From Gracilinanus agilis (lineage: Eukaryota), in the NCBI RefSeq assembly GCF_016433145.1, contig NC_058134.1, forward strand, positions 10,482,189 to 10,546,188: 64,000 nt of DNA, given 5' to 3'. Position 1 is the stretch's first letter. Every line of letters starts with the position of its first letter. Shown piece by piece: positions 5,830-49,927 of this stretch. The notes beneath the pieces are model-generated. The model saw only the letters and a program-made list of their open reading frames with translations, did not search any database and had not been told where the DNA came from. The translations under genes and the position numbers were made by a program.

Positions 5830-8800
5830 TACAGTGTATCCATCTCTGTGTATAATGTTTTCCTTTCACTCTGCGTCAATTCCTGGAGGTCATTCCAGTT
5901 CACATGGAATTCCTCCAGTTCATTATTTCTTTAAACATAATAGTATTCCATCACCAGCATATACCACAATTTATTCAGTAATTCCCCAATTGAAGGGCAT
6001 ACCCTCGTTTTCCAGTTTTCTGCCACCACAAAAAGTGTGGCTATAAATTTGTGTACAGGTCTTTTTTTTCCCTATGATCACTTTAGTGGTACAAACCCAA
6101 CAATGGTATAGCTGGATCAAAGGGCAGGAATTCTTTTAGTGATCTTTGGGCATAGTTCCAAATTGCCATCCAGAATGGTTGGATCAATTCACAACTCCAC
6201 CAGCAATGCATTAATGTCCCAATTTTGCCACATCCCCTCCAATATTCATTACTTTCCCCTGCCATCATTTTAGCCAATCTTCTGGGTGTTATATGATACC
6301 TCAGAGTTGTTTTGATTTTCATTTCTCTAATTATTAGATATTTAGAACACTTTCTCATGTGCTTATTGATAGTTTTGATTTCTTTATCTGAAAATTGCCT
6401 ATTCCTGTCCCTTGCCCATTTATTGATTGGAGAATGGCTTGATTTTTTGTGCAATTGATTTATTTCCTTGTATATTTGAGTAATTAGACCTTTGTCAGAG
6501 TATTTTGATATAAACATTTTTTCCCAGTTTGTTGTTTCCCTTCTGATTTTGGTTGCATTGTTTTTGTTTGTTCAAAATCTTTTTAATTTAATGTAATAGA
6601 AATTATTTATTTTACATTTTTGTAATTTTTTCTCACTCTTGCTTGGTTTTAAAATCTTTCCTTTCCCAGAGATCTGACAAGTATACTATTCTGTGTTCAC
6701 CTAATTTTCTTAGTTTCCTTCTTTATATTCAAATCATTCACCCATTCTGAATTTATCTTGGTATAGGGTGTGAGATATTGATCTAAAACTAATCTATCCC
6801 ATATTGTTTTCCAATTTTCCCAACATTTTTTTTGTCAAATAGTGCATTTTTCTCCCAAAAGTTGGGCTCTTTGGGTTTATCATAGAATATCTTGCTGACA
6901 TCACTTACCCAAGTTTATTCCACTGATCCTCTCTTCTGTTTCTTAGCTAGTGCCATATTGTTTTGATGACCAATACTTTATAGTACAGCTTGAAATCTGG
7001 TACTACTAGACCACCTTCCTTCACTTTTTTTCATTATTTCCCTTGATATTTTTGATCTTTTGTTCTTCCAAATGAACTTGGTTATAATTTTTTTCTAATT
7101 CAATAAAAAAGTTTCTTGGTAGTTTGAAAGGTATGGCACTAAATAAGTAAATTAATTTGGGTAGAATGGTCATTTTTATTATGTTAGCTCATCCTACACC
7201 TGAGCAATCAGTGTTTTTCCAGTTGTTTAGATCTAGTTTTAATTGTTTGGAAAGTGTTTTGTAGTTGTGCTCATATAATTCCTGTGTTTGTTTTGGTAGA
7301 CAGATTCCTAAGTATTTTATATTGTCCAGGGTGATTTTAAATGGTGTTTCTCTTTCTGCCTCTTGTTGCTCTAATGTGTTGGAAATATATAGAAATGCCG
7401 ATGATTTATGTGCATTTATTTTTTATCCTGCAACTTTGCTAAAGTTGTTGATTATTTCTACTAGCTTTTTAGTTGATTCTCTAGGACTTTTTAAGTAGAC
7501 CATCACATCATCTGCAAAGAGTGATAGCTTAGTCTTCCCATTGCCTATTTTAATACCTTCAATTTCTTTTTCTTCTCTAATTGCTACTGTTAGTGTTTCT
7601 AGTACAATGTTAAATAACAGAGGTGATAATGGGCATCCTTCTTTCACTCATAATCTTATTGGGAAGGCTTCTAATTTATCCCCATTGCATATGATGCTTG
7701 TTGATGGTTTTAGATATATACTGTTTATTCTTTTTGGGAAAGGCCCTTCTATTTCTATACTTTCTAGTGTTTTCTGTAGGAATGGGTGTTATATTTTGCA
7801 AAGGCTTTTTCAGCATCTATTGAGATAATAATGTGGTTTTTGTTGGTTGGCTTGTTGATATAGTCAATCATGTGGATGGTTTTCCTAATACTGAACCATC
7901 CTTGCATTCCTCATATAAATACCACCGGATCATGATGGATAACGCTCCTGATCACTTGGAGGAGTCTTTTTTCTAGTATTCTATTTAAGACTTTTGCATC
8001 AGTGTTTATTAGGGAGATTGTTCTGTAATTTTCTTTCTCTGTTTTTGGTCTGCCGGGCTTTGGAATCAGTACCATATTTGTGTCATAAAAAGAATTTGGT
8101 AGGACTCTTTCTTTGCTTATTATGTCAAATAATTCGTGTAATATTGGGATTAGTTGTTCTTTGAATGTTTGATAGAATTCACTTGTGAATCCATCAAGCC
8201 CTGGTAATTTTTTCTTAGGGAGTTCTTTGATGGCTTGTTCAATTTCTTTTTCTGATATGGGATTATTTAAGTATTCTATTTCTTCTGCTGTTAACCTATG
8301 CAATTTATATTTTTGTAAATATTCATCCATATCACCTAGATTGCTATATTTATTGCAATATAATTGGGCAAAATAGTTTTTAATGATTGCCTTAATTTCC
8401 TCTTCATTAGAGGAGATGTCTCCCTTTTCATCTTTGATACTGTTAATTTGGTTTTCTTCTTTCCTTTTTTATTACATTTACCATTATTTTGTCTATTTTA
8501 TCTGTTTTTTCAAAATACCAGCTTCTAGTTTTATTTATTAATTCAATAGTTCTTTTACTTTTTATTTTATTAATTTCTCCTTTGATTTTTAGTATTTCTA
8601 ATTTTGTTTTCATTTGGGAATTTTTAATTTGTTCATTTTCTAGTTTTTTTAAGTTGCATGCCCAATTCATTAATCTCTGCCCTCCTTAATTTGTTAATAT
8701 ATGCACTCAGTGATATACATTTTCCCATTAAAACTGCTTTGGCTGCATCTCATAATTTTGGTAAGAAGTATCATCATTGTCATTGTCTTCAATGAAATTA

Positions 8801-9601
8801 TTAATTGTTTCTGTGATTTGTTCTTTCACTAACTTATTTTGGAGCATCATATTATTCAATTTCCAAATAATTTTTGGTTTGCCTCTCCATGTATTCTTAC
8901 TAATAACTATTTTTATTGAATTATGATCTGATGAGGTGGCATTTATTATTTCTGCTTTTTTGCATTTGTTTGCCATGTTTCTATGCCATAGTAAATGGTC
9001 TAGCTTTGTGAATGTCCCATGTGCTGCTGACACCTTTTTGTCCCTATTTCTTTTTCTCCATATATCTATTAACTCTAATTTTTCTAGAATTTCATTCACT
9101 TATCTTATCTCTTTCTTACTTATTTTTTGGTTTCATTTATCTAGATCTGATAGGGGAAGGTTGAGGTCCCCCACTAGTATAGTTTTGTAGTCTATTTCAT
9201 CCTTGAGTTCCACTAGCTTCTCCTTTAGAATTTTGGAAGCTATACCATTTGGTGTGCACATGTTGAGTACTGATATTTCTTCATCATTTATACTGCCTTT
9301 TATTAGTATGCAATTACTTTCCATATGTCTTTTAACCAGATCTACTTTTACTTTGGCTCTGTCAGACATCATGTTTGCAACTCCTGCCTTCTTTTTCTCA
9401 GTTGAAATATATAGTTGAAAAATATAGTTTTTGCTCCACCCTTTCATTTTTATTCTATGTATGTCTGCCTGTCTCATGTGTGTTTCTTGTAGACAACATA
9501 TGGTAGGATTTAATTGACTCTGATATGTGCTTCCATTTTATGGGAGAGTTCATCCCATTCACATTCAGAGTTATAATTATCAACTGTGTATTCCCAGATA
9601 T
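5830..9601 (-). pseudogene. Disrupted L1 ORF2 (endonuclease / reverse transcriptase)
   Basis: Several frame-broken ORF fragments (6083-6517, 7423-7647, 7911-8330, 8443-8670, 8728-9099, 9133-9477, 9455-9640) with L1 ORF2 motifs. Boundaries approximate. Confidence 0.9.
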
Positions 9602-10086
9602 TTTGATTCTTTCTTCTTGTCCTGCCCTTTCTTCTTTCACTATTTACTTCTATACCAGTGTTTTGTTTTCAATTAGTTGCCCTAATCCCCTCCCTTATTG
9701 TACTTCCTTTCTCCCCTCTCCCTTCTTATTCCCCTGTTATTCTTCTTTAGGGTCTTTTTAAGCTACCCCCCCACCCTCTCCCTTCCTAGTGTTGCTTCCC
9801 TCCCCACAAGTCTTTATGTTACCCTTCTACTTCTCTATAGGGCTTGAATCAATTCTCTGCCCTAATGGATCTGAGAATTCTTCCCTCTTTAAGTTGATTT
9901 CAATGTACTTAGGTATTAAATATTTCCTCTCTCCAACCTCTTTACCCTTCCACTGTATTGTTATTCTTCCCTGTTCACCCCATGTGCTTCTTTATGGAAT
10001 ATAAACTTACTCCATTTTGTTTGTTTTCCCAATTTTCTTAATATTACCTTGTTTTTCCCTCTAGTTTTGTATATATTTATACATAC

Positions 10087-10090
<4 letters not shown>

Positions 10091-10132
<42 letters not shown>

Positions 10133-10148
10133 ACACACATATATATAT
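10091..10148. repeat. (AC)n/(AT)n microsatellite in the L1 inter-ORF spacer
   Basis: Direct reading. Confidence 0.95.
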
Positions 10149-10329
10149 CTTGACATTTTATCCTGTATAATTTGTCACTGTTCCCTCTATGTAAACTTCT
10201 AGTTACCCTCTTGATAATAATTTTTAATACTTGACAATATCTTCTTTTCTTTTAGGGATACAAATCAATTGAACTTATTGGGTCCCTTAAAAAAAAGATT
10301 TTTTTATTCCCCCCCCACACACACTCTCT

Positions 10330-11347
10330 TGATTGTCTCATGGTGATTCTGTTGAGTTCTGTGTTTGGGCAGCAAACTCTCTGTTTAAGTCTGGTTTTTT
10401 CTTTATGAATGCTTGGAAGTCCTCAATTTTATTGAACAACCATACTTTCCCTGCAAAAATATAGTCAGTTTTGCTGGATAGTTGATTCTTGGTTGTAGGC
10501 CCAGATCTCCTGCTTTCCAGAATATTATGTTACATGCCTTCCAAACCTTCAATGTAGATGAAGCCAGATCCTGAGTTATCCTAACTGTGGTTCCCTGGTA
10601 TCTGAATGACTTTTTCTAGCAGCTTATAATATTTTCCCTTGGTCTGGTAGTTTTTTAATTTGGCTATAATATTCCTGGAAGTTGTCATTTGTGGATTAAG
10701 TATAGGAAGTGATCTATGGATTCTTTCAATTTCCACTTTCACCACTTGTTCGAGAATGTCAGGGCAATTTTCTTGGATCATTTCCTGTAGGAGGATGTCC
10801 AAACTTTTTCTTTTGTCATGATGTTCCAGTAAACCAATAACTCTTAAATTGTCTTTTCTAGCTCTGTTTTCCAGATCTTTGTGTCAATGAGGTGTTTCAT
10901 ATTCCTCTCAAATTTTTCATTTTTTAAATTTTGTTTTATATAATCTTGCTGCCTTGTGAAGTCATTTGCTTCTAGTTGTTGAGTTCTATTTTTTAAAGAC
11001 TGAATTTCATCCCTGACTTTTTGGTCATCCTCCTTCTGGTCTGATTTTCTTTGTAGATCATCTTTTGCCTTCTTTGCTTCATTTTCAAGCTTGGCAATTC
11101 TGGCTTTTAAGACTTTATTTTCTTGTTTTAGTTCATGTATTTCCTTTTTCAGATTGTCTTCAACCTCTCTTGATTGCTTTTTGAGTTCCTGAAGCTCTTA
11201 CGTTAATTGAATTTTGAGATCTTCCAAAGCTTGTGCCCAATTCGCTGGAACTTCTTCAACTTCTGCTATTTCATTTGCTTTCTTTTCACTTCCTTTAAAG
11301 GAGCTGTCAATTGTCATTTATTTTCTCTTTTTCTGTTGTTTACTGAT
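10330..11347 (-). pseudogene. Disrupted L1 ORF1
   Basis: Fragment 10581-10802 (QENCPDILEQ..VEIERIHRS). The start codon reads ATC (ATCAGTAAACAACAG) where the related copy at 34613 has ATGAGCAAACAGCAG. Confidence 0.85.
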
Positions 11348-16935: not shown

Positions 16936-17379
16936 ACCTATCCACCCACCCCCATAAAAAAAAAAGAAAAGATAGTCTCTTTTTTTATTATTAACTTGGT
17001 TCTCAAGTCATATTTAAGTGAAAGGTAGTGTGAACCTCCTGAGAAATGATTATTTCAAGTCAATGGACCCTCCATTTCTCCACATCATGGTTTTATAAGG
17101 ATTTATAGATCCTGGGTTTGTTGAGGAGTTACTTGATTTTGCTATGATACATTACAACTAACCTAGAGGTTCAGGAATTCCTTGATCATAGCTAGATCTG
17201 ATTGCTGTTCTGTACAGGAATTCTTTATAAAATTCCAGAACATGAGTTAGAAATTGACTTAGAGAATCCAATAAACTTGCAAGCTTTGGCCGACTTCCAA
17301 GCTAAATTTATAGACTGGAAAAAATATGGCCTTTCCATTGTCCTCTTTTTTTTTCTTTTTTATCCCCTTCAGGATAGTC

Positions 17380-17429: not shown

Positions 17430-17968
17430 GCTCACACAGATTTATCATTTTGCTGACACCAGAGTTGGAAATTAAATTTTCAGTGCGCGGGAATCAGACT
17501 AGGGTGTTGGAGCTTCAACTTTTTTCATTGGGGTTCAATGCTTCTAAGACTCCATCCTCCACCAAGGAAGGATTTCTTCTCCTCCTTCCCGGCAAGAAGA
17601 ATTCAGGACACAGATGTAATGAGATATGAAGTCGTATTCCTAAGTGGGATTTGTCAGTCCAGTGGCTGGGGTGCCCATTGATGGCTGAGTTCAACCCCCT
17701 AAACGCCTCTAGTGCCTTCCAGGCTCCCACAGCACTTTTTCTTTGAGTCATGATATAAACAGCTTTAATCAGATATTTTATTTCGGCTAATTCTATGAAA
17801 GGCTAAGGGGGGGGGGCAGAAAACAAAGTCAGAAGCCTCTAATAGGTTCCAATTCTCTGTATTACAAGAAGAGACAAGAATTCTTTCTTTCTTTTTCTTT
17901 CTTTCTTTCTTCCTTTCCCCCCACCTTTTTCCCTATCTTATAATTGAAAACCTATCTTGTTCTTCCAG

Positions 17969-18024
17969 AATGGGTTTGCTGTTGTAAGGCCCCCAGGCCA
18001 TCATGCTGAAGAGTCAACAGCCAT
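17969..18024 (+). CDS. HDAC9: HDAC9 coding exon (about human exon 18), 56 nt: NGFAVVRPPGHHAEESTA(M)
   Basis: Acceptor tcttgttcttccAG and donor AT|GTAAGT. Encodes the RPPGHH catalytic His dyad of class IIa HDACs. Phase 0 to phase 2. Confidence 0.97.
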
Positions 18025-19340
18025 GTAAGTACCAGGGAAGACTGGCCATCCTGGAGCACTGGGGTTACTGGCAGTCACCTGCCCTGTGCACGTCTCTGAA
18101 ACCCTCTAATTGTTAGCAGATGCCTGCCGAGGCTTGCGGGGTCCTCCCAGAAGCAGATTTATGGCTTCAGAGATCATATAGCATTTTGAGAAATGCCCTG
18201 AACGTTCTTTCTAAGGTGTTTTTTTTTTTTTCCTGCCTGATTTGCTTTCTGATTTCTCTGTTCTCTCTTCTGCAGGGGGTTCTGCTTTTTTAATTCGGTG
18301 GCGATTACCGCCAAATACTTGCAGGAGCAGCTCAATGTAGGCAAGATATTGGTTGTAGACCTGGTAGGTATCCCGGGCGAGCTCTGGTTTCTGGGGTTGC
18401 TGGGGGAGACGGTGGCCTTCTTGCCCCACGTCCGTGGGCTGCATCGCCTTCTCGCTACTCGGGGAGTGCGTGGCCTCCCAGACCAATGTGGAAACTCATT
18501 AAATCCGGCCTGGGCATTCCGAAACCATAAACATGAAGCTTTCACTTTCGCAGCATTAACCGAGATTTAATGAGAAGAAGGCACAGCTCGGGGCAGCCTT
18601 TTTATGGTCCTTAAATGAATTGATACTTCCAGTGTTAAAATAACCCAACAGAACCCCAGTTTACTTTCCCCCATAGAATAGAGGCCCTAACGAGTCCGAT
18701 GGGCTGGAAAGAATGCTGTTGCCATGGTTACCAAATTGGCCACTTCCCCTGCGTCGGATCCCTCCGCTTGTTGTGTAACACTGGGATCATTCAGACCAAC
18801 GAGCTTGTCATTCTCTGGGCGCGGATGCCAGGGTGGGATGTCTCCCTGCAGGAAAGCAGAATGATTAAAAGGCCGCAGCAGCGTTGGGCTGGGCTGGGCC
18901 TCCGCTCTAAGAGGATGCATTCTTGCACAATGGAGTTATAATTTGCTTAACAAATGGTTTGTTTAAATGCGGGTGACATTTGGCATGTTGTCCATAGCGT
19001 GTGCATGAATAAGGGATTGGAGCTTTGCCTCCCCCAAAAGGACCAGCTCCGTGCGCGGGCAGAGGGAGAGTGGGAGGGTGATTTATGAGGCCCAGGCTGG
19101 CCAGGCCGACAGTTCAGCGGAGAGGTGTAATGGGTTGTCTGACAAAGCATAGACAGGAAATGAACCCTGGCATCCGAGCCTAACCCGGGGCATCTGCACT
19201 TAATTAATTTTTGCAGGTGATAAAAGATTTAAAGACAAAATATGTTCAAGGCTTTTTTGAAGTGCACGGCTTAATAGTCTAAATCTTGTTCATATCTGCA
19301 CTCATAATTAAATCTTATTGGGAAGTCATGGCCTTACCAT
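18025..19340. promoter_or_regulatory. CpG-dense intronic/exonic enhancer-like element around HDAC9 exons 18-19 (candidate TWIST1 enhancer ortholog)
   Basis: About 40 CpGs counted in 18121-19200 against a CpG-poor background. No repeats. X-box, PBX-HOX, homeodomain and E-box motifs. Human HDAC9 exon 18/19 is a reported exonic enhancer. Confidence 0.7.
18276..18363 (+). CDS. HDAC9: HDAC9 coding exon (about human exon 19), 88 nt: (M)GFCFFNSVAITAKYLQEQLNVGKILVVDL
   Basis: Acceptor ctctcttctgcAG and donor CTG|GTAGGT. 56+88=144 nt keeps the frame. GFCFFNSVAI motif; the VDL ending is HDAC9-like (HDAC4/5/7 have VDW). Confidence 0.97.
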
Positions 19341-19369
19341 CTAGCACTTTGGTTCACTTAAGCAAACAG

Positions 19370-21130: not shown

Positions 21131-22915
21131 AAGGATATTTGTGATTTCCCTCCTCATTTTAGTTGTTGGTTAGTTAACGCAAGAAGAGACTTGGGCATGA
21201 TGGAGGGGGTGAGGTGGGGAAGGCAGAAAGAGATCAGATGCTCTGTGTAAAGTGAATGTGCTAGGGAGTTCTTCTGACCTGTATTTTCTCCTCCATCCCC
21301 TCGGAGAACAGGATTTTCCCAGCAGGTATTGATTGGAGGTATCCATTGCAGAATGTCTAATACTCCCAGTTCTGTTCAAATGGGCTCTCTTTAAGACTGT
21401 TGGCCCACAGATACTCCAGTGATATCCTAAAGACTGCAGCTGCAGGGGCTATTTTGGGGGAACTCTGTTTCTTCCAGCTGCCGGGGATGAATTTTTGAAA
21501 TGCCACGTGGCCTGGAGACATCCCTTTTCCTGGCTAACAGATCTATTCTCCAACTTAGCTAGAGGGGAAAAAAGTGAAACTTAACTAGCCCAAGAGAAGC
21601 CTTACCCTTTCAAACCTCAAAAGGACATAGGCTAGGGAAGAGTCTTTTCCTTGAATGGATACCTGCTCCATTCTCCCTGAGGGAACTGCTTCCATTTTCT
21701 ACCTTTAGTGAGAGTTTGAGTTCTGATTTTATTCCTTTCTCAGAGGAATTCCAAAGACTTTGGTGATTCGGGCAGAATTCATTTCCATGAGTTCATTCAA
21801 CTCTCTTTCCGTAGAAGACTCCAATGATCTTGAGCATCCTTGGGAATCACTAAAGTCCCTTTCTGCTCTAGATCCTATAAGATGACTAGATGGAGTTGGG
21901 TAGTGGTCGGTTATTTCTACAACTCTCTGTCTTAGTTTTGCTTTCTTTCTATAATCTGAGCGTTGTGAGATTGTCCCACCCTTGTGCCATGACCACTTTC
22001 CCTGCAATCTTCCTAAACTATGGATGATCTCTACTCTCCAGGTTATTGGGGGAGACAACATATACACACTTAAGAATATACAGAATTTTTTTTTTAAAAA
22101 TGCAAGGTAGATTTTGGTGGAGAGTGGGGGAAGGCCATTGGAAGCAATCAGGAGAACCTCCCAAGTGGAAAGTGATGCTTGCTCTCTGTGTCTCTGAGGA
22201 AATGAGCAGTGAGTACATTTCTAGCTATGGGGTTCAGCCAGTCCAAAGGCACAGAGATGGGAGATAGATTATCGTGAGTAAGAAACAGAAAGAATAATAC
22301 CAGCTTGGTTCAGTTGTAAGTGGAACTTGGAGTAAAAAGGAAAGAGGCAGGAGGGGGAGGGGGACATAACAAGCTACCAATGGTCTCTCAGAGACCTTAA
22401 CCTCAAATTCATTATAACTAGCTTCTCTAAGCTCTTTCTAGTTGATTGATGTGTGGGATGTCTGCGTTCTATCACTTCCAAATTCAGCGAAGCTAAACTC
22501 TTCGTGGCAGTCTTGGCTTTTTGCATGAAGTGATAGGGAACTAAGCCTAAACTCTGTCTCCCTCCCCAACTCCACACATAACTTGCTTCAGGGATATGAA
22601 GCCCAAAAAATGACTCCCCATGAGTGAATGCATGTTCAACCACTATCTTTGACTTCATAACTGAGAAGCAGATTTCAGTAGAAGAACACAAATAGCCAGT
22701 GGAGTGATTATTAGAGAGTGTGGTTTGGCCAGTGGTACATCAGGGTATGAGTAGTAGAAAAGAGGGACTCTGATAGAACCTCCATCACTGAGCAATATTC
22801 TTAGCATTCTGTTATTAGATGGCATGAGCAGCCTCATGATTCCAAAACCCACGGTTGGATTTTAGCCTCTTCCATTTTGAGAAGTTTTGCCTCCTTTTTT
22901 GCCAATTGAATATGG

Positions 22916-30214: not shown

Positions 30215-30830
30215 AAGGCAATCATCTAATGTTGGATTCATGCAGATTGCTTGAGCTTTCTCCCTGATGTGTGTGAATCCCCCATGCTCTCTGCCTGCTC
30301 TGGGCCAACTGATTTAATAGCTAATGAGCTCATACTTCTGGGTCTTCAACCCTTGCCGTCACAATTTTACGAACATGAAGTATGAAGTCCTTTCTGCATC
30401 TGGCATCTCTTTTGAAGTGAATCTAACTGCTGAGGGACTGCTCACTGAACTGAACACTTCAAGAAGGCCAATTTACTCAGCTGGTTGCAGAGCCTTTGAC
30501 CTCGGCGGTGGAACTTGGCAAATCAGTGAATACACTTAGGCTCAGTGTTCTGTCAAGAATTGTGGAAAATGCTCTCCAATCCATAGCTCCTTCTGCAGAA
30601 TGTGAGCTTGCAGCTTAAACATTCGTCTTTCTTTGGAGGCCAATGAGGCTGGTTAATTAAGCCAGAGGGGTTATGAACTGTTGGCAGTTAATAAGTCATA
30701 AACTCCCCCCATAAAACAGGATGCTAGATTCCATCACTGGGGCAAGGACTACAAAGGGCCGGTGTATAAATATCTAATTGTACAAAAGGACTGGGATTTC
30801 TCAATGACTGCTCATCTGGAGTCTCTAGGG
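30215..30830. promoter_or_regulatory. Enhancer-like block upstream of exon 20, rich in posterior-HOX/homeodomain motifs
   Basis: TTTTACGA 30365-30372, TTAATTAA 30653-30660, GTCATAAA 30695-30702, CCCATAAAA 30708-30716, CATCTG E-boxes. No repeats recognised. Confidence 0.5.
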
Positions 30831-31085
30831 CATGCTTGCTGTGGTTTCCTGATTTTTAGAAGCCAGTTTAAAAAATGAGTGCATTAAAGAGTAATTTGCC
30901 CCAAAGTCCAGGAAGTCGAGGGGGTGGCAGTGGAAGCAGAAAGAAAGAGAGAGATGCAGCCAGGGAAGGAAGAAAGAGAAAGAGAGGGAGCATGGGCTGG
31001 GGGCTCCGGGGGGAGGCAGGCATCGGACACCGTCTCCACACTGAGCAGGATAAGACTGCATTTGTCATCTGTTTGCTCCCTCTAG

Positions 31086-31205
31086 GATGTTCACCATGGG
31101 AACGGTACCCAGCAGGCCTTTTATGCTGACCCCAGCATCCTGTACATTTCCCTCCATCGCTATGATGAAGGCAACTTCTTCCCCGGCAGCGGAGCCCCAA
31201 ATGAG
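31086..31205 (+). CDS. HDAC9: HDAC9 coding exon (about human exon 20), 120 nt: [40 protein letters not shown]
   Basis: Acceptor tttgctccctctAG and donor GAG|GTTAGG. Zn-binding DVH motif. [17 protein letters not shown] and GAPNE are HDAC9-diagnostic versus HDAC4/5/7. Confidence 0.98.
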
Positions 31206-31520
31206 GTTAGGTTTATTTTCTTCAGAGTCCCGTTTTTATTTGTATCTTGCCCATAATTGCATGGCGTGATTACCCCTAATTTTCTAGTCCTTTGCCGGGG
31301 CTCTAAATTACATGAGATTACTGAGTTCTCCCAGGAGACCATGGCCCAACCAGGAACAAGTGTATAACCCAGAACACAACTTGTCAAGCGGGACCCTGCC
31401 GGTTTGATGTGCTGTTTAAAGTTTGTTTCAAAAGCTTGCCTGTCCTTCTTTGCTTCTCTCTGGTTTTCCTTCCTTGTGCTCTCTCTCTGTGACCTAGTAT
31501 GGAATTCTTCCTTTTCCTAG

Positions 31521-31618
31521 GTTGGAAGTGGCCTTGGAGAGGGATATAATGTGAATATTGCCTGGACAGGTGGGCTGGACCCCCCCATGGGAGATGTGGA
31601 GTACCTTGCAGCATTCAG
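31521..31618 (+). CDS. HDAC9: HDAC9 coding exon (about human exon 21), 98 nt: [32 protein letters not shown](R)
   Basis: Acceptor ttcttccttttcctAG and donor AG|GTGGGT. In frame with the previous exon. [23 protein letters not shown] is HDAC9-type. Confidence 0.98.
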
Positions 31619-34489
31619 GTGGGTACTCCATTTACCCAGAGAGAAACTGATTGAAGTGGAAAGTAAACTGAGGCAAGCTCTGTCCAGGCAGAAAAAGAAA
31701 CAAACAAGTCCAAGAAAGACCCAAGTTCTTGCTGAGACTGAGCAGACTTAAAATGACTCCTTTTAATATTTTAATAAAATATAAGAGTGGATAACTGGGG
31801 AATTTGGGGAAGATGATCCAAAGAACATAAAAGAGAAACACATGCAATTAACATTTCATTTTTAGGTTCTTCCACAACCCCAGAGCACTGTGGGACAGGG
31901 GAACTGACCAAGAGCCCAGATGATACCGCTGTGTATAGAATTACTCATGTCTCTTGGGCCTCCTTTCCTGCCTCCCTTTCATCCTTAAAAATAGTCAAGC
32001 CATTCTCTCCCATTCTTTTTTCTCCACTTCCAATATGTGTACTCTCAGCAAGAAGAATGGTTATACATTCCCTATGACTCTTTTAGGTGTGATGGGGGTG
32101 GGGTGTAAGATTGCACCCATGATCTATATATTGAAAACTGGCTTAGAAATTCCCTCCAATGCAGAGTGGCACCCTGGTCAGAGAGAGAAACCAAGACTTG
32201 GCCTCTCCCTGCTTTATTGTTCTGCCTTACATTAATTTTAATCACTGCAATAAATGGCACTTTGCAAAGCACTTGGCATATGTAACTTCTTGGTGGCACT
32301 GATGAGCAAAGCCAGCTGAGCCATCCATCACCCTAGAGTCTGAGGCACTGCCAGGCATGCCTGAGGAGCTCATTCCCCTCCAGGGGCACGCCTTTCTCTT
32401 TCAACCTGTGGTACGTTGCCTTTGAGGGCAAAAGAAAAAAAAATAGACACCCACCTTATATTCCTCACACATCTCTGTAGATGCACTGACTTAACAAACA
32501 TGCTCCTTGAGATTATTCTGGACAATTAAGGGGAAAAAAAACAAAAATAAATAATTACACTTTTTATAGTAAATGGGTGCCATTGAACCCTTTGGACCTC
32601 AGGTAAAACTCAGCATAACAACTCTCAGCATATTTGGAGTCAGAGATACCTGGGTTCAATTTCTGATCTACCTGTGTGACCCTGGAAAGCCTCATCATCT
32701 CTCAGCATACCAGGGAACTCTACGAATTTAAGTTATAATGCTGCCAAAAATCTCTCTCCTGGTGAAATTTCAGGCATGAAAACCTCTTAAAAAGAAACAG
32801 TCTTTATAATTTAACAGAGAAATAAGGAATTAACAATGTCCTTCTGGGTAATCAAGGACTTCTATATTAGACTAGATAAAATGAGGGAAGGGGAACCCCA
32901 AGAAAAGCACATAAACCACCTTTTTATAGGCCAGGTCCTTTTTCTGTTTTCTAAATGGCACCTATTTATCTCTCTCATTCATTTGCTCATACTTAACTTT
33001 AAATACTTGAGGCATGCTATGGTGGCATATTTGTTCTTTTAGGGGGAATCTTTCAAAGTGATGGCTTTGGCTTCCAGCTAATAAATAAGGTCCTCAATAG
33101 ATTTGATATTTCATGTTCATGATTATAATAGTATTTAAATTACACTGAAAGCAGTAAAATAAGGGACTCTCTCTCTTGTGGTATCTCCCACAACCCCCTG
33201 TTCCATTTCTGACTACTTTATGCCAGGGAGAACTGGGTGTCCTTTATTCTTGAGTTTTAAAGGGGATCCACTGCAAGAATTCCTGCCAAGTGGAAGCCTT
33301 CTCCTGTCAAGGGGATAAGTGGATTGAGGCCACAGTTCAAAGAAGTAACAGATGCCAGTGGCAACTCTCACTTCAACCCCACCCACTTTCTGGATTTGCT
33401 CTTTGAGCCCAGGTCTCTATAATATACAGTGTTAAATCTGCCCTATAGAATAAATAGGTCACAAGGTATATAAAAGAACTACTATTTGCTGGAAGACTCA
33501 TGGGTGGTCCAAGAACATATTTTTTTATTAATTCACATCACACCTAAATGCAGAAATAAGCTAGAAAGCCATATGGGTTTCCATTTTATTTTTGCTCTTT
33601 GCCCATATTTCAAAATGTTCAGTTGAATCATTAATTACTGAAAGGGACTACAAGATTTCAGGGCTTAAATCCGACCTCCTGTGAGTACTTCATTTTTCTA
33701 CTTCCAAAATCAATCTGGCATCTTGAGGGTTTTCTTTTTTTTCCTTATATGACTTTAAAAGTTCCCACCATCTTGTTAAATATTTTTTTAAAAGTCTCAT
33801 GAAATAGCCACACAACTTCACAATCATACTGAGATTCTTGGTCTTACAATAGGGAACTGTCACAGTCTGTTGTCCTACTCAACAGACCTCATCTGCATTT
33901 CATTTTATGACTCAGCTTCCAGGGACCATAGCTACTCCTTCTCATAAGGCTGGAATATAGAAGAGCTGGGAGTTTCCATGATGTTTTCAAATGTGATCCT
34001 TTCACAAAAATAAATAATGGATTAACTCTTTTTAGTTAATCAAAATACATTTATTAAACATGTATTATAGAACAGAAACTGTACCAAGCACTGAGATCAG
34101 GAACTTTTACTAAAGAAATCATTCCTTCCCTCAGTGGGCTTTTATTACACATTAGCAGAAACATCATAGATATAAATAAACATATGAAAATAAATACATT
34201 ATCATATTTTGGGGAGGAGAATACTAACTCTACGGATTATTAGGAAAGGGCTTTGTATAGAAAATGAGCTGAACCTTGAAGGAAATGAGGGATTCTAAGA
34301 GGCAGAAGTGTTAGGCCAGTACATTTCATGCAAAAGAATAGCTGAACAAATTGTGGCATACAAAAGTAATTGAATATTATTTTTAAATGATGAATGTGAA
34401 GAATTCAGAGAAACATAGGAAAACTTTGACTAACTGGTGGTGAGAGAAGTCAAGAGAAAAATTTACACAATGACTATGGATACTGAAGA

Positions 34490-37245
34490 TCCAGACAGAT
34501 TTCTTAGCATTAAAATACTTGACACTGGACAGAATAGTCCTAACCCATAGATCCAGCAAATAAACAGAGGAGCAAGATTATAACCAGTGACGGGGGGAAA
34601 GAAGGAAAAAATATGAGCAAACAGCAGAAAAAGAAAAAAAAAAGAAATTATAGTTGACAGCTTCTATTCAAGTTATGAACAAAGAGCAAATGGAACCAAG
34701 AAGGATCTAGGAACACCAAGCAAAAATGCAGAAATTCCAGTGAATTGGACACAAGCTTTGGAAAAACTCAAAACATAATTGAAAAAACAATTAATAGAGG
34801 CTGAGGACACTTGGGAAAAGAACTTAAAACGCAAAATAAGTTATCTGGAAACAGAGACACATGAACTAAAACAAGAAAATAGTGTCTTTAAAGCAAGAAT
34901 TGACCATCTTGAAAATGAGGCAAAGTAGGTGAAAGATGACTTACAAAGAAAATCAGGCCAGAAAGAGAACAAAAAATCCAGGAATTAAATTCAGTCTTTT
35001 AAAATTAGAATCCAACAACTAGAAGCAAATGACTTCACAAGGCAGCAAGAGTTTGTAAAACAAAATCAAAAGAATGAAAAAATTGAGGAAGCTGTGAAAC
35101 ACCTCATTGATAAAATTACAGATATGGAAAATAGATCCAGGAGAGACAATTTAAGAATTATTGGACTACTGCGAGATCATGACAAAAGTAAAAGCCTGGA
35201 CATTATTCTACAGGAAATTATCCAAGAAAACTGCCCTGACATTCTTGAACAAGAGGGAAAAGTGGAGATTGAAAGAATCCACAGATCACCTCCTGCATTT
35301 AATTCCCAACTGACAACCGTCAGGAATATTATAGCCAAATTCAAGAACTATCAGAGCAATGAAAAGATACTACAAGCTGCAAAAAAGAAGCCATTCAGAT
35401 ATTATGGAACCACAGTTAGGATAACACAGAAGCTGGTTACATCCACACTAAAGAACTGGAAGGTGTGGTATATGATATTCTGGAAAGCAAGAGAACTCGG
35501 TCTACAACCAAGAATCAACTACTGAGCAAAACAGACTATATTCTTGCAGGGGAATGGTCATTTAATAAAATAGAAGACCTCCAAGCATTCATAAAGAAAA
35601 GATCAGACTTAAATAGAAAATTTGATCCCCAAACATAGAACTTAACAAAAGGTAATTAAGAAAGGGAGAAAAAAAACCCCCAATAACTTTTTTTAAGGGC
35701 TCCAATAAGTTCAAATGATTTGTATTCCTATAAGACAAGATGACATTGGTAACTCTCAAAAATTGTTATTATCAGGGTAGCTGGAAAAAGTATACTTAGA
35801 GGGAACAGTGACAAACTGTATAGGATGAAATGTCAAAAAATTATGGGTAAAAAAGAAGAGAATACTAAGAGAAATGGGGAAAAAAGACAAAATAGGGTAA
35901 ATTCATATTTCATAAAGAAGCACATGGGGGGAGGAATAGGAGACCAATGCAATGGAAAGGTAAAAGAGTTTGGAGACAGGTAATGCTTAATTGTTATCTG
36001 CATTGAAATTGACTCAAAGAGGGAAGAACAATCAGATGCATTGGGGCAGAGAATTGTATCGTGCCCTATGGAGAAGTAGAAGGGTAATAAACAGGATGGT
36101 GGGGAGGGAATCAATACAAGGGAAGTAGAGGGTGGGAGTAGTTTAAAAGGCACTTTAGAAAGAGGGGAATAAATAACGGGAGGTGCTGGGAAGGGAAGGG
36201 AGGAGAAAGGGGGGAAACTGACTAAAAGTGAAAAGTTGGAGGGGAGGGTAAGAGGGATAAGAGAAAAGGCAGAACCTAATGAGGAAGTCAAAATGGAGGG
36301 AAATACACAGATAGTAATCATAACCGTGAATATGAATGGGATTAACTCACTAATAAAAAGGAAGCAGATAGAAGAATGGATTAAAAGCCAAAATTCAACC
36401 ATATGTTGTCTACAAGAAACACATTTGAGGCAGGTAAATATATACAGGGTAAAGGTAAGAGGGTAGAGCAGAATGTACTTGGCTTTAACTGAGACAAAGA
36501 AGGCAGAAGTAGCAATAATTATCTCATACAAAGCTAAAGCAAAAATAAATTTCATTTGAAAAGATAAGGAAGGTAATTACATCTTGATGAAAGGCAGCAT
36601 AAATAATGAAGAAATATCAATACTCAACATATATGCACCAAATGGTATAGCAGTCAGATTTCTAAATGAGAAACTAAAAGAACTTAAGGAGGACATAGAT
36701 AGTAAAACCATACTAGTGGGGGACCTCAAACTTCCTCTATAAGAACTAGATAAATCAAACCCAAAAATAAATAAGAAAGAAGTAAATGAAGTAAATTAAA
36801 TGTTATAAAAACTAGAGCTAATAGATATTTGGAGAAAAATAAATAGGGATAAAAAGGAATATACCTTATTTTCAGCAGCACATAGCAAATATACAAAGGC
36901 CGACCATGTACTAAGCCATAAAAACATTGCAAGCAAATGTAGGAAAGCAGAAATAATAATTTTTTTCAGATAATAATAATCAATAAGGGTTTATGGAAAG
37001 GCAGATTTAAAACTAATTGGAAACTAAATCTAATTCTTTAAAACTGGTTGGTCAAAGAACAAATCAAATTACTGATTTCATTGAAGAGAATGACAATGAG
37101 GAAACAACTCATAAAAATCTATGGGATGCAGCCAAAGCAGTACTCAGGGGAAAATTTATATCCCTGAGTGCATATATCAACATATTAGAGAGGGAAAAGG
37201 TCAATGAATTTGGCATGCAAATTAAAAACTAGAAAGAGAACAATA
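34490..37245 (+). mobile_element. L1 fragment (end of 5'UTR, ORF1, spacer, ORF2 endonuclease), truncated at both ends, sense to HDAC9
   Basis: ORF1 ATG at 34613 (MSKQQKK) and ORF1 fragment 35094-35525 (RSRRDNLRIIGL..IERIHR). ORF2 ATG at 36293 (MEGNTQIVIITVNMNG). LWDAAKAVLRGKFISL at ~37120, then L1 similarity stops. Confidence 0.92.
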
Positions 37246-41000: not shown

Positions 41001-43079
41001 GATAAATTATTTCCTCAAAGGCAATTAATAAAGCAACAAGAATTTGAGTTGCTCCTCTGCTCTGACACTCTGATTCATGCTGAGTGATACAAATAAAAAG
41101 TGAACAATCCCTGGCCTCATGGACCTTGCATTCTAATCAAGGAGGCAATATGTACATATAAAAAGGATAAATGAAGAGTAGATGGGGGGGTAACCTTAGG
41201 GAGAAAGTTATCTAGCATAAGTGAACAAGGATTAATTTATAGGGTCATGAAAATAAAGATATATTAGATGAGGTCTTCTTAATTTTTGTTGAATCATAGA
41301 CTCTCACCCCCCTCTACCTCTTGGCCATTTATAGGTGCTTTCTCAGAGTAATGTTTTTAAAACAATAAAATAAAATTCATGGGATCATAAAAGAAATAAA
41401 TTATAATGGCATATAATTATCAAAATATTTGAAAAGTCAGGCTCCCAGACTACAGGCTAAGAACCCTGTCTCTAGAGTTTGAAAGGACATTAGACTATTT
41501 ATTACAAACCCCTCACCTTACTGACATAGACATTGAAGTCCAGGAAGGTTAAGAGACTTGGCCCAGGTCACACAAGGGCAGTGTAATTTTTACTAATATG
41601 CTTCAGAGTTAAGACTCCTTTCACTCTGACTCCAGATCTTGGGTTTTGTTTCCACTTTCTCTCCCAATTGTGTACTTGGCATTGTGCTAGGTACGAGGAA
41701 TAGAAGAACCAAAAAATTAAACAGTTCATACCATTGAGGAACTTACATTCCACATACAGTGGAAGTGATGTAGTGGATATAATTTCACAAATATATGAAG
41801 GGACAAACAGATGAGCTTGGCATGCAGTAAGATGAATAGATTACTGATGGAGAGTGTTCATGCTCCATTGGAATCTGGATAAGATCAAGAGAATGAGAAG
41901 AGCCTCATCATGGTGACTTTGTTTTATTGAAGGAAATGGATGGGAGTCACATGAAATGGGCAGGCACTAATGAGTCTCAATCTGCATTGTTGGAAAGAAC
42001 TATACCCATTAATGGGCTAGATTCCAGATCAATAGGGATTTTGTCATTCTATTACAATATTTGAAGTATGGGACTTTTGAGATAATATGATTCGTCCCAG
42101 TTGCTCCTGAAGTTGTCCTTAATTAAATATAAGGTGAGAGTTGAAGTTTTAGATTCCCCAAAGAAGTTGCAAAATAACTGCCGCCTTTAATTCACTGCTT
42201 CTTATACTGTGGAATTTCATTTGGCTCCTAAGAGCTGTGGGTGATGATAGCCAGTGTGGATGCATTCACAATAGTTAATAAAAGCCAAAGTGCCTTTCAT
42301 GTCCTGTATTTTCCCAGCAGCATCCAAGATGCTGGAAAAGGGCTGGGATTTCTTGAAACAATTTCCCAATGTTAAATGCCATGTATGTCATATCGGCCCT
42401 CCTACCACCTTTCCCAGACCATTTATCATCATTCCCAAACCAGGCCCACATTTCCCGTATCTGGGAAACCACTAATAAGGAAGAGGTGGGTTTAAAATAT
42501 AAGCATGTCTATCTACTCTGGGAACAGCCCTCTGACATACCTTGCCTCAATTATTTTTCTTTTTTATTTCAACAAGGAACTCCAAAACAGTGACGGGGCA
42601 GGCATGACCTACAGCATGGCATGCTTTTCTCTTTTTCTTCCCAATACCTCTATATGATCAAATGGCCTAAGAAGATCAACTGGGTTGAGTCAGAGCCAAA
42701 ACATATCCAGTAGGATTTTAGGAATACTTGGAGAATGTATCCTGTCTGATTTCTAATTTTAGGGATAAATAAGCACATAAAAATGTCTGTGCTGTCTTCT
42801 CATCTGCACCACATATTGTACCAATTTTCATCAAAAAATTACAATTTCTGGAGATGTGTGTCTCTAGATACCCTCAGAATTTCTGCTCCTTGACCTGGAT
42901 GGTAAATTGATCTTTGGCACACCTGCCCAGCATGGGAACCTCTTTGGATGTCTCCTTTTTGAGCTTAACATCAATAAGATTGGATCATTATAAGCCACGT
43001 CCTACTTAAGATTAACAAAAAAAAATCACAAACTGAATCACATCAAGGGAATAACTTTACTTTCTAGGAAGAACTCAAA

Positions 43080-46300: not shown

Positions 46301-46921
46301 TGTTTAATTGTTGACCTTTGGCAGACGGTTTTATTAAAAACCGATTATTTAAGATAAGACCAAAGTGTCACGTCAAGAACCACAGAAACTGGAGGCTAGA
46401 GTGGCTTCACTTGGTTTCATACCTGCTTTGGAGAGCTTCGCTAATGAGGACACTGCATCGTCCCCCTTGCAATTCTTCAAAAACAAAACAAAAAAAAAAA
46501 GGTCGGCTTTTATTTTCCTCCATTAAAACATGAACTCAGTTGGCTGGAAGGGCTGGGTGTGTGTGTGCATATATGCCTGGGGCATGTTGGCATGGAAGCA
46601 TGCATGTGCTCCTCAGCTCTGTAGTGGAGAGGGGGATTGGTTTGACTTGGGTTTAGGGACGAGCAAGTAGAGCTGAATGGTGGGCCTTTAGTGGTGCTGA
46701 GGAGTGGGAAAGAGGTATGTTCTCTGTTGGAATTATGACTGGAGTACATGTGGTATTTTCCAGTCCCAGGGATATTTTAAGTGTTTGCCAAGGCAGTGAA
46801 TAAAATGCTTTGTTTTCCTCTATTCTACTTGCCCAAGTACAGGACAGCCATCACGCCCCAGGTCAATCTAGTCATAAATTATCTGGGCAACATTATTAAT
46901 CTAGTCCATCTGAAATACGCC

Positions 46922-47400
46922 CTGTATCTCTGTCTCTCTGTCTCTCTCCCTTTCTCTTTCCTCTTTATCTCAACCTCTGGACCGCTGATTCTCTCTCTGT
47001 TTCTCTATCTCTCTCTGTGTGTCTCTGTCCTCTCTGTCTCCCTCTATTTCTCTCTCTGTCTCTGTCTGTCTGTGCTCTCTCTGTATCTCTGTCTCTCTGG
47101 GTCTCTCTCTCTGTCTGTCTGTCTCTGTCAGTCTCTGTCTCTCACTCTTTTTCTGTCTTTCTGTCTGTCTCTCTTTCTCTGTCTCCATCTCTGTCCTTTT
47201 CNNNNNNNNNNNNNNNNNNNNNNNNNNNNNNNNNNNNNNNNNNNNNNNNNNNNNNNNNNNNNNNNNNNNNNNNNNNNNNNNNNNNNNNNNNNNNNNNNNN
47301 NNNNNNNNNNNNNNNNNNNNNNNNNNNNNNNNNNNNNNNNNNNNNNNNNNACTCCCTGCTTCCCTCTCTTTCCTTCCCTCCCTCCTTCTCTCTCTGGAAT
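46922..47400. repeat. (TC/TCTG)n pyrimidine-rich repeat spanning an assembly gap
   Basis: Direct reading; N run at 47202-47350. Confidence 0.9.
47202..47350. other. Assembly gap (149 N)
   Basis: Run of n. Confidence 1.
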
Positions 47401-48057
47401 ATGGAATGCACTCTCTTTTTATGAGACATACAGAAATCTCTCAGGATATTTTGGCCAGTCTTAGACGTGGATGTGAATTGGAGGCTTGGACGTTATTCTC
47501 ATCCAGATACTCCGAAACTGGCCATTACTCACACTCCCACTGAGAATTAGAAGAAGGTAGCTGACATGGCTAACATTTTTGGAAATGAAACGCTCTGAAG
47601 GCTGGCTGGGCTTGTCCATATTGGAGTCAGCCTGAATCTTTACTCCGTTTAGCCCCTGTTATATACTGCTTCGCTCTTTAAATCTAGACTTTGATCATTC
47701 GAATGCAGTCACAGCAGAGTCTGTGTCCATGGTCTGGGTTCCTTTAGAAACGGCCACCTTCCGAAGCCTACCGAGGCCCACGTTTCCCAGAGTTCTTTCA
47801 TGGGCCAGCCTGCCCGCTAACAAATGGGGCTCACCAACAAACTAAATAAATTACTACACGGATTGGGCCTTTGAGGCTCTGGGCGAAGAATGGAAAAATT
47901 ATTTACAAAAGCTTGAAAATATTTAATCACCAGAGGCAGGCAGTGGGGGTGACGGCATTTTAATTAGCAAGTCCTCCGGCCATTGGATGGCTGGGGGGTG
48001 GGGGGTGGGGGTGAGGGTTGGTTCTTTCTCAACAGCCCCCCAAAATCACTCCCCCTC

Positions 48058-48221
48058 NNNNNNNNNNNNNNNNNNNNNNNNNNNNNNNNNNNNNNNNNNN
48101 NNNNNNNNNNNNNNNNNNNNNNNNNNNNNNNNNNNNNNNNNNNNNNNNNNNNNNNNNNNNNNNNNNNNNNNNNNNNNNNNNNNNNNNNNNNNNNNNNNNN
48201 NNNNNNNNNNNNNNNNNNNNN
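48058..48221. other. Assembly gap (164 N)
   Basis: Run of n. Confidence 1.
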
Positions 48222-49604
48222 CGGGTCTCAGTGACTTTGATAGTGTTTGAAGTCCTAAAAGTGTTCTCCACACCACTAGCCTGCTGGGCCGGGCCTCCCC
48301 GGTCACCTTAATTATGGAGCTTTGTTGCCGGCTTTACTGCCCAGGAAAGGGGCCATTATATGTTCCATCAACATCAACTCTTCTCAGATTGGAGGAAAGG
48401 CCAGGTTGAAAGGCCACCATAGAAAGGCAAAGACTTCACTTTGAGGCAGTCAGATCATTTACCAGGCTTAAATTTCACTGGGTTATGGATGTGGCCGGCA
48501 CATTCCTCCCAACACAGAAGCCTCAATTTCCAGTTTTTAAACAAGTGATTACTTTTCAAAACATTTTGTTTGTGCCTGTTTGGGTGGAGGGGTTACTGCT
48601 CCTCAGGTGTGGAGGCAATTCCAGAGGAATGGATAGAAAAACACCCAAACAGACAAACACACCATCTCTGCCAACAGCCCAAGGACCTTTCCATTAATCA
48701 CACCACCAAAAAGGCCTGGTTGGAGCTATAATGAGGGGGATTATTATTAATGCTGCCTTACAAGTCAGACAAAGCGAGCAAACATCCTGTAGCTGGAGGG
48801 TTGTCCTGATAGCCCAAGGAAGGAGAAATCTTGCTGGGCACTCCAGGGTTCCCCGCCAGCTTCTTGAGTAGAGCCTTGCCTTATCTGAAAGGGAATGAAG
48901 AGTCAGGCCTCCCTGGAGCCTGGGCCTGAGGCTGGGATCTACAGAGGAGAAACTCGGCTAATTTTGTTAAGAGTCTGTATCCTCACAGGAACCTCCTCCC
49001 AGACCCAGGCGCTCCTCTTGGTGCTAAAGGAAATCTGGGAGAGAGAGCACATGAGAAGACTCATTCTTCAAACTGCATTTCCCTGAAAGAAGGGATTGTT
49101 CACCCTAGGAGAATTCACGGACAAGTTCCTAGTACTTGTGTCTCATTGTATAATGGTTGGATGCTTGGATGCTGGAAGCCTAAAACCTTCTGGAAGAAAA
49201 TTGATGTAAATCAAGCAGCTTTGAATGTGTCAGACAAAAGCAGGTTCTCTTTCTACTAAAGATCCTGGTCTTGAATGAATTCATATATTCGATAAGCTCT
49301 AATGAACAACCACTGCTCAGGTGGAGAAGAGACTGGACAGACAAAGGCAGAAAAGGAGAGGCAATAGACCAACTCACAGGCTGGGTTGGGCTTGGTGGGA
49401 TGGTAAGAATTTGGTAGCTGTACCGGCACTGACAGGTCATGGAATGAAATGATGGCCAAAATGAAACTACCTGCTTTTGCATCTCCAAGATTGTGAGACC
49501 TAAGAAAAGGATAGTGGTCTTGGAACAGATAATACTCAGAGTGGAGTAAAATATCTGAACCTAACTCAGAGAGCAGAAGCAGGACAAAAATCTAGCCAAT
49601 CTGT

Positions 49605-49736: not shown

Positions 49737-49927
49737 NNNNNNNNNNNNNNNNNNNNNNNNNNNNNNNNNNNNNNNNNNNNNNNNNNNNNNNNNNNNNNNN
49801 NNNNNNNNNNNNNNNNNNNNNNNNNNNNNNNNNNNNNNNNNNNNNNNNNNNNNNNNNNNNNNNNNNNNNNNNNNNNNNNNNNNNNNNNNNNNNNNNNNNN
49901 NNNNNNNNNNNNNNNNNNNNNNNNNNN
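49737..49927. other. Assembly gap (191 N)
   Basis: Run of n. Confidence 1.

Follow-up and report, generated by a model that had tools for sequence, protein, structure and literature searches.

The stretch of DNA analysed here, termed the window, comprises 64,000 nucleotides of contig NC_058134.1 of the marsupial Gracilinanus agilis, and positions given without a further label are counted within it. It holds four exons of the histone deacetylase gene HDAC9. The subject of this report is a block at 17934-19364 that is composed of two of these exons (exons 17 and 18), the 251-nt intron 17 between them and about 1 kilobase (kb) of intron 18, and that we compare with eTw-7, a published enhancer of TWIST1. 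An earlier reading, made from the letters of the window and referred to below as the sequence-only reading, had flagged 17969-19340 as dual-coded, CpG-dense DNA and as the likely marsupial ortholog of an exonic TWIST1 enhancer. The edges of the block as aligned to other species nearly coincide with these coordinates.

For comparison, loci of the lemur Lemur catta (L002), the vole Alexandromys fortis (L003) and the skink Lerista edwardsae (L004) were reached through partial HDAC9 gene models found by protein search, and were aligned with blastn and MAFFT. The four-way alignment of the block is called A1. A scan of metagenomes for vertebrate orthologs gave one locus (L001) at 27% identity, which was judged irrelevant and left unused.

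HDAC9 exons in the window

Four class IIa histone deacetylase exons follow one another on the plus strand of the window, among them those with the RPPGHH and DVHHGNG motifs (Table 1). Exons 17 and 18 correspond to positions 101-120 (E 1e-4) and 121-149 (E 1.8e-8) of the Pfam profile PF00850, respectively, and exon 19 continues the series. The peptide of exon 18 runs GFCFF...VVDL and matches residues 167-194 of HDAC4 in the PDB, and that of exon 20 ends in ...AAF(R). Across exons 18 to 20 the matched HDAC4 residues are contiguous, and the HDAC7 domain is matched as well. Splice sites and reading phases fit, and both are kept in the four species of alignment A1. No further HDAC exon motif was found in the window upstream of 17969 or downstream of 31618, and no Rfam family has a match anywhere in it.

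Scans against protein families left open which paralog this is. The exons were searched one by one, and exon 19 alone was put through an exhaustive protein search. It is 100% identical to the 'histone deacetylase 9-like' protein of Lemur catta and 98% identical to vole HDAC9, as against 88-92% for HDAC4, 85% for HDAC5 and 82% for HDAC7. By this comparison the host gene is HDAC9, as the sequence-only reading had it, and its exons here are consecutive exons of the class IIa catalytic domain. Reading on through the donor of exon 19 gives a further 16 residues and then a stop codon (31206-31256), and in its first part the DNA is conserved in lemur, vole and skink. The extension resembles the truncated HDAC9a isoform, which ends in this intron. 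Hidden coding capacity in the block was considered and rejected: open reading frames there are short and lie on both strands, and the read-through frame of exon 18, used in a word search, gave no hit.

Table 1. Features of the window; exons are numbered as in the enhancer literature
Feature	Position	Strand	Description and evidence
Conserved block	17934..19364	.	Probable ortholog of TWIST1 enhancer eTw-7 (HDAC9 'eExon 18'); blastn and four-way alignment
HDAC9 exon 17	17969..18024	+	56 nt; encodes NGFAVVRPPGHHAEESTA(M); AG acceptor, GTAAGT donor
HDAC9 intron 17	18025..18275	+	251 nt; conserved, identity 60-78% (A1)
Homeodomain and E-box composite	18107..18122	+	TAATTGTTAGCAGATG, Coordinator-like; pattern TAATTRNNNNCAGATG
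Near-invariant island	18144..18178	.	With CAGATTTATGG (HOX-type TTTATGG); invariant columns in four species
HDAC9 exon 18	18276..18363	+	88 nt; encodes GFCFFNSVAITAKYLQEQLNVGKILVVDL; AG/GT splice sites
CpG peak	18364..18484	.	9 CpGs, GC 0.67; least conserved part of the block, identity 0.34-0.41
Conserved core of intron 18	18485..18680	.	About 80% identity in all three comparisons (A1)
X-box-like motif	18718..18727	+	GTTGCCATGG; eutherians have GTTGCTTTGGTAACC there; not conserved in skink
PBX-HOX-type motif	19079..19089	+	TGATTTATGAG; invariant in four species
Second homeodomain and E-box composite	19206-19191	-	TAATTAAGTGCAGATG, Coordinator-like, reverse orientation; pattern TAATTRNNNNCAGATG
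Near-invariant island	19191..19240	.	50 nt; CATCTG-CACT-TAATTAA (contains TTAATTAA), then CAGGTGATAAAAGATTTAAAG (A1)
Ortholog of eTw-6, non-coding part	30295..31085	.	5' intron flank of exon 19; primer match 23/23; blastn
HDAC9 exon 19	31086..31205	+	Encodes DVHHGNG...GAPNE; Pfam PF00850 positions 150-188, E 1.9e-15
HDAC9 exon 20	31521..31618	+	Encodes 32 residues and (R); PDB HDAC4 residues 236-267, HDAC7; alignment A2
Candidate ortholog of eTw-5	47837..48821	.	83-87% identity; lemur L002:66239-67143, vole L003:58155-58846

Published enhancers and the numbering of the exons

Two enhancers within HDAC9, eExon 18 and eExon 19, were described by Birnbaum 2012 (PMC3371700), and for eExon 19 both the exon and the proximal 5' intron were found to be required. 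They were renamed eTw-7 and eTw-6, respectively, by Hirsch 2018 (PMC6233932), and eTw-5 was added to them as the strongest limb enhancer of the cluster. Contacts with the Twist1 promoter and responses to LMX1B were shown, the latter also for eTw-7, which is without a TFAP2 site (PMC6233932). In the mouse, a 23-kb deletion that takes out the three enhancers together with four Hdac9 exons lowers Twist1 expression and causes polydactyly (PMC6233932). The conservation of eTw-7 has been published as reaching the frog. Measured against both papers, the account of the enhancer system in the sequence-only reading is sound.

The exons are numbered here as in Birnbaum 2012 and Hirsch 2018, and the numbering was anchored with primers from the S3 list of the latter (PMC6233932). 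The forward primer of eTw-6 segment 2 matches the window at 23 of 23 positions (30675-30697; 0 in 100 shuffles), and the reverse primer of segment 3 at 18 of 21 (31075-31095), ending 10 nt inside an exon. As these primers for eTw-6 (eExon 19) fall at 30675-31095, the exon that begins at 31086 is exon 19, the two preceding ones are exons 18 and 17, and the next is exon 20. The window thus holds exactly four clustered exons (17-20), which equals the number of exons lost in the mouse deletion of eTw-5 to eTw-7.

The sequence-only reading had instead taken the two exons of the block to be exons 18 and 19. In human, the eExon 18 and eExon 19 fragments start 5.6 kb apart (PMC6233932), whereas the two exons of the block are separated by 251 nt here and by an equally short intron in lemur, vole and skink. 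Therefore, they cannot be the published eExon 18 and eExon 19, and this part of the earlier reading has to be given up. They are exons 17 and 18, and exon 19 with eTw-6 lies 12.7 kb farther downstream (at about 30.3-31.2 kb).

Probable orthology of the block to eTw-7

The block aligns with the lemur locus (L002:49090-50510) in one continuous blastn alignment of 76.3% identity over 1463 columns and with the vole locus (L003:39179-40594) in another of 74.8%, while the skink (L004:12796-14200) aligns in four pieces. Across the window as a whole, alignment to the eutherians is confined to conserved islands. Intronic conservation with eutherians, the absence of which the sequence-only reading had named as telling against it, is therefore present. 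Identity to the three species is unevenly spread over the block. It is 0.91-0.96 in exon 17, 0.84-0.85 in exon 18 and 0.60-0.78 in intron 17; within intron 18 it stands at about 0.8 for 18485-18680 and at 0.72-0.79 for 18950-19340, and falls to 0.38-0.65 for 18681-18949 and to its lowest level immediately behind exon 18.

The arrangement of the elements agrees with the published one. In lemur and vole the block lies 5.2 and 4.8 kb, respectively, upstream of the eTw-6 ortholog, and eTw-7 and eTw-6 are published as 5.6 kb apart in human and 4.4 kb apart in mouse (PMC6233932). Comparison with human was limited to the published primers, which were searched in the window and in the lemur and vole loci. 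For the eTw-7 forward cloning primer, the initial 11 nt have a single site in the lemur locus, at 49070, which is 20 nt before the block. The reverse primer has a match of 15 out of 21 near lemur position 50708 (by eye), about 1.66 kb downstream of the forward site; the published human fragment (hg19 chr7:18,868,712-18,870,405) measures 1693 bp (PMC6233932). Together, the two partial matches in the lemur enclose the stretch aligned with the window.

Several observations weigh against an assignment to eTw-7. The eTw-7 cloning primers and those for quantitative PCR have no match with three or fewer ungapped mismatches in the window, the lemur locus or the vole locus, so that the link to eTw-7 rests on exon order, spacing, alignment and the partial primer matches. 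TWIST1 itself lies outside the 64-kb window. Finally, eTw-5 is labelled 'intron 19' in Hirsch 2018 (PMC6233932), whereas under the present numbering it follows exon 20, which we read as a slip of labelling.

On the other side stand a number of likenesses to eTw-7, also known as Rr136 (PMC3371700; PMC6233932; PMC9341515). The host gene is the same, and the exon concerned is the one directly before exon 19. Order and scaled spacing with respect to eTw-6 and eTw-5 are the same, the block aligns over its full length with its eutherian orthologs, and the copy in the window has a TAATTA site of the LMX1B type and no TFAP2 site. It differs in that exon 17, which the papers do not mention, lies inside the fragment, and in that its CpGs are about two to three times as many, and its GC content about 8 points higher, as compared with the copies of lemur, vole and skink. 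Weighing both sides, we consider it probable that the block is the marsupial ortholog of eTw-7, overlain by a younger, lineage-specific gain of GC and CpG. Exon order, spacing and alignment of the block support the claim of orthology to a published exonic enhancer of TWIST1. The label eTw5 attached to it was misplaced: the element corresponds to eTw-7 (eExon 18), and a candidate for eTw-5 is found at about 47.8-48.8 kb.

Site patterns group lemur with vole and the window with the skink at 123 sites, against 32 and 23 for the two alternatives, and the p-distance of the window is 0.216 to the lemur versus 0.268 to the skink, as would suit a mammal outside the eutherians. Judged from the four-species alignment, the dual-coded element is one that dates back at least to the amniote ancestor. 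Among sequencing runs, one contains 0.90 of the words sampled from the block and many runs of other organisms contain about 0.35, which suggests that the latter come from close relatives.

Conserved islands and motifs

Two composites of a homeodomain core and an E-box stand out in the block. Their common pattern has these two matches in the window, 18107 on the plus strand and 19206-19191 on the minus strand, and no others, where 0.04 would be expected. Both are kept in the four species, with two substitutions outside the cores in the vole at 18107. The Coordinator motif has been described as TAATT[A/G] joined to an E-box of the CAGATG type, a distance of 6 bp separating the E-box and the homeodomain core (PMC10312427; PMC12102336). 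Both composites have TAATT[A/G] and CAGATG at the described spacing, and both are conserved over amniotes. They were matched to this verbal description rather than to the published weight matrix, and the base following CAGATG is C in the window and not the G of the 'CAGATGG' half-site.

The second composite belongs to one of the near-invariant islands. It contains the LMX1B-type site TTAATTAA at 19200, which is invariant in the four species. No TFAP2-type site of the forms GCCN3GGC, GCCN4GGC or GCCN3GGG is found in the block. An LMX1B-type site combined with the lack of a TFAP2 site is the content reported for eTw-7, a comparison that holds at the level of motifs. In another island, which lies in intron 17, CTCCCAGAAGCAGATTTATG at 18144-18163 is invariant or nearly so in the four species.

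The sequence-only reading had listed a PBX-HOX site, a posterior-HOX site, an X-box and E-boxes, and all of these are located where it had placed them. The PBX-HOX 10-mer TGATTTATGA at 19079-19088 has an expectation of 0.09 in the stretch, given its density in the window, and belongs to an invariant motif. The posterior-HOX-type TTTTATGG at 18600-18607 has a conserved TTTTAT core and a final GG that is specific to the window. The X-box is not conserved in the skink, and the E-boxes (CANNTG) number 6 against 6.8 expected from the density of the window and are thus not enriched.

A lineage-specific gain of CpG

There are exactly 40 CpGs in 18121-19200, the figure of about 40 given before, at a GC content of 0.51 and an observed/expected ratio of 0.57. 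The interval 17969-19340 has 42. By comparison, the CpG observed/expected ratio of the whole window is 0.15, its median count per 1080 bp is 4 CpGs, and 18121-19200 is its top-ranked 1080-bp block by CpG. Three of these CpGs fall in exon 18, at 18296 (TCG), 18302 (GCG) and 18309 (ACC|GCC). The synonymous TCG and GCG that had been attributed to exon 19 are thus present, in the 88-nt exon that is exon 18 in the numbering of the papers. It had also been said that the block is free of repeats, and we found no tandem or in-window interspersed repeat copy within 17934-19364, whose two flanks are (TTCT)n and a purine-rich tract of low complexity.

This CpG density had drawn attention in the sequence-only reading, and by comparison with other species it does not belong to the conserved enhancer. 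The orthologous stretch has 42 CpGs in the window (GC 0.49, observed/expected 0.50), 14 in the lemur (GC 0.40, 0.24-0.25), 18-19 in the vole (GC 0.43, 0.28-0.29) and 19-20 in the skink (GC 0.39, 0.35-0.36). Only 2-3 of the 42 are common to the eutherians and none to the skink. Changes were polarised by parsimony over the four taxa, at sites where the window departs from a state common to lemur, vole and skink. On the window lineage, the block has 86 weak-to-strong changes (A/T to G/C) against 21 strong-to-weak (binomial p = 1.6e-10), while on the eutherian stem the numbers are 24 and 35. The well-aligned parts keep the bias, with 14 against 6 and 19 against 1, and in the CpG peak, where the orthologs have 0-2 CpGs, it amounts to 20 against 3. 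Exon 18 has six weak-to-strong changes on the window lineage, including TCA>TCG and GCA>GCG; lemur, vole and skink have the forms ending in A at both codons.

An ancestral set of CpGs, lost in parallel elsewhere, was also considered and was rejected. At 13 of 14 informative sites, one and the same product, TG or CA, is seen in eutherians and skink; had the losses been independent, agreement would be expected at about half. Many of the window CpGs also face AA, GG or CT in the other species. Therefore, the CpGs are gains. As far as the polarised changes tell, the CpG richness is a local, lineage-specific gain over conserved islands of the binding-site type and is not ancestral.

Other elements of the window show little of this. 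The eTw-6 ortholog has 50 weak-to-strong against 25 strong-to-weak changes (Fisher p = 0.04 versus the block) and a CpG observed/expected ratio of 0.26, and the eTw-5 candidate and the smaller conserved pieces resemble their orthologs, with no CpG excess. A separate conserved non-coding element at 17009-17350, about 600 bp upstream of exon 17, is 75-79% identical to lemur and vole. Its portion 17009-17290 has no CpG, versus 6-7 in the eutherians, and a lower GC content, a trend opposite to that of the block.

Two points limit this reading. The vole branch also has a weak-to-strong excess, 44 against 11 in eTw-7 and 45 against 13 in eTw-6. The marsupial is therefore not alone in showing GC-biased change at these enhancers, and given parsimony over four taxa, the bias could in part be methodological or the outcome of a process common to both. 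In addition, one marsupial enters the comparison, so that the gain could be marsupial-wide or recent; when the partial HDAC9 protein of the lemur was used for a word search, no partial gene model of a marsupial or monotreme came up. The vole copy of eTw-6 has 33 CpGs, as compared with 17-22 in the other three species.

Possible origins of the CpG layer

Since the split from the eutherians, about four weak-to-strong changes were fixed on this lineage for each strong-to-weak one, within the 1.4-kb block only. Its GC content went up from about 0.40 to 0.49 and its CpGs from about 15-20 to 42. Tracts of GC-biased gene conversion, for example in some human accelerated regions, have a weak-to-strong excess on the scale of a kilobase. 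The block resembles such tracts in being a local and lineage-specific weak-to-strong excess within a conserved non-coding element. Of the possible drivers, we think a local hot spot of GC-biased gene conversion the most likely, at about even odds. Reduced germline methylation, giving rise to a nascent orphan CpG island, is the main alternative, or a co-factor, to which we assign a somewhat smaller chance.

A rival reading is that the block has become such an island in this lineage. It would then be unmethylated in the germline and early embryo and would alter the old enhancer, for instance as a poised element assisted by Polycomb and CpG islands that communicates more strongly or earlier with the CpG-rich promoter of TWIST1. 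Orphan CpG islands have a role at poised enhancers. At nearly equal GC content, the block has a CpG observed/expected ratio about twice that of eTw-6 (0.50 versus 0.26), and the gain is confined to the conserved element while the neighbouring conserved element lost CpGs. The CpG peak falls in spacer DNA under weaker constraint, the motif islands being left intact, and 200-bp windows that satisfy the Gardiner-Garden definition (GC at least 0.5, observed/expected at least 0.6) merge to cover 18247-19249. However, the merged interval itself has an observed/expected ratio of 0.58 at a GC content of 0.505, and no stretch of the window reaches the Takai-Jones thresholds (at least 500 bp, GC at least 0.55, observed/expected at least 0.65). 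Moreover, the strong-to-weak rate per site is 0.061 in the block and 0.060 in eTw-6, and it is the weak-to-strong rate that differs. We regard an orphan island that modifies the enhancer as less likely than not.

The conservation might alternatively reflect splicing signals in the HDAC9 pre-mRNA, the CpG richness then being incidental. Short exons often depend on intronic splicing enhancers, and the block has two very short exons (56 and 88 nt) with a short conserved intron between them. Yet conservation extends about 1 kb into intron 18, where the strongest islands, resembling homeodomain and basic helix-loop-helix (bHLH) sites, are at a distance of 830-880 nt from the exon. In addition, the human fragment drives a limb-bud reporter in the mouse, the region contacts the Twist1 promoter, and the deletion of eTw-5 to eTw-7 lowers Twist1 and causes polydactyly. 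Splicing as the source of the conservation is therefore improbable. A chance fluctuation or a young repeat insertion, of which the largely SINE-derived CpG-rich kilobase at 55.1-56.2 kb (SINE, short interspersed element) might serve as a precedent, is refuted and has next to no probability left: the block ranks first with 40 CpGs against a median of 4, has no repeat copy, and can be aligned over its full length with lemur, vole and skink, so that it is not an insertion.

The wider enhancer cluster

Beside the block, the window has an ortholog of eTw-6 that is far more strongly conserved. The interval 30295-31625, which comprises eTw-6 and exon 20, is 81.6% identical to the lemur. The eTw-6 ortholog has runs that are invariant over amniotes (GGCCAATGAGGCT.GTTAATTAAGCC.GAGGGGTTATGAACTGTTGGCAGTTAATAAGTCATAAA and TTAATTAAGCC[A/T]GAGGG), and in it, unlike in the block, TTAATTAA adjoins GCCAGAGGG. 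It is the element that the exon numbers of the sequence-only reading had put partly within the flagged stretch. It is like the block in being an exonic enhancer of the same cluster and differs from it in being a separate element, about 12 kb downstream, in the degree of its conservation and in its lack of a CpG excess.

The distance of the eTw-5 candidate downstream of eTw-6 fits the published one (11.7 kb in human, about 15 kb in mouse). Two published eTw-5 primers have no match in the readable sequence of the window, which has runs of N at 47202-47350, 48058-48221 and 49737-49927, the second of which interrupts the candidate. Another CpG-rich kilobase, at 55.1-56.2 kb, was rejected as the eTw-5 ortholog, as it is largely a MIR-type SINE and hardly aligns to the eutherians. 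Taken together, the window appears to hold the whole eTw-5/6/7 cluster of TWIST1 enhancers within HDAC9, in a marsupial.

A few other features may be mentioned. The interval 55100-56400 is the second most CpG-rich kilobase of the window, with 32 CpGs, and CpG density can here also mark repeats. Non-coding stretches conserved with the lemur at 71-88% lie in HDAC9 introns 18 and 20, at 21434-21559, 42231-42980 and 46220-46387; the latter two have matches in the vole and the first has none. Finally, 8646-11154 and 34688-37228 are inverted copies of an interspersed repeat, about 80% alike, 21-28 kb apart and similar to long interspersed elements.

Proposed function and implications

If the block is eTw-7, the same DNA would serve two roles. 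It would code for HDAC9 where this gene is expressed, and in the mesenchyme of the limb bud, and probably of the face, it would bind factors of the homeodomain and bHLH classes, including LMX1B and perhaps TWIST1 itself. It would then loop to the TWIST1 promoter and act together with eTw-6 (at about 30.3-31.2 kb) and the eTw-5 candidate (at about 47.8-48.8 kb). Because the block is orthologous to an element tested in its human form and has kept the conserved cores, we infer that the fragment would still work as a limb and face enhancer of TWIST1 in Gracilinanus agilis.

Human and mouse versions of the element have been described before; the local gain of CpG is a modest new observation. One may go further and suppose that a burst of A/T-to-G/C changes in the spacers created an orphan CpG island, that this island altered the timing or strength of TWIST1 expression, and that it contributed in this way to the early development of the forelimb and face in marsupials. 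We regard this chain as a long shot. Should biased gene conversion be all there is to it, the finding would warn against inferring constraint from the density of CpGs in marsupial introns. In either case, the block offers a testable example of the regulatory effect of gene conversion, or of the birth of a CpG island, at a developmental enhancer of a gene whose dosage shapes the limbs and skull.

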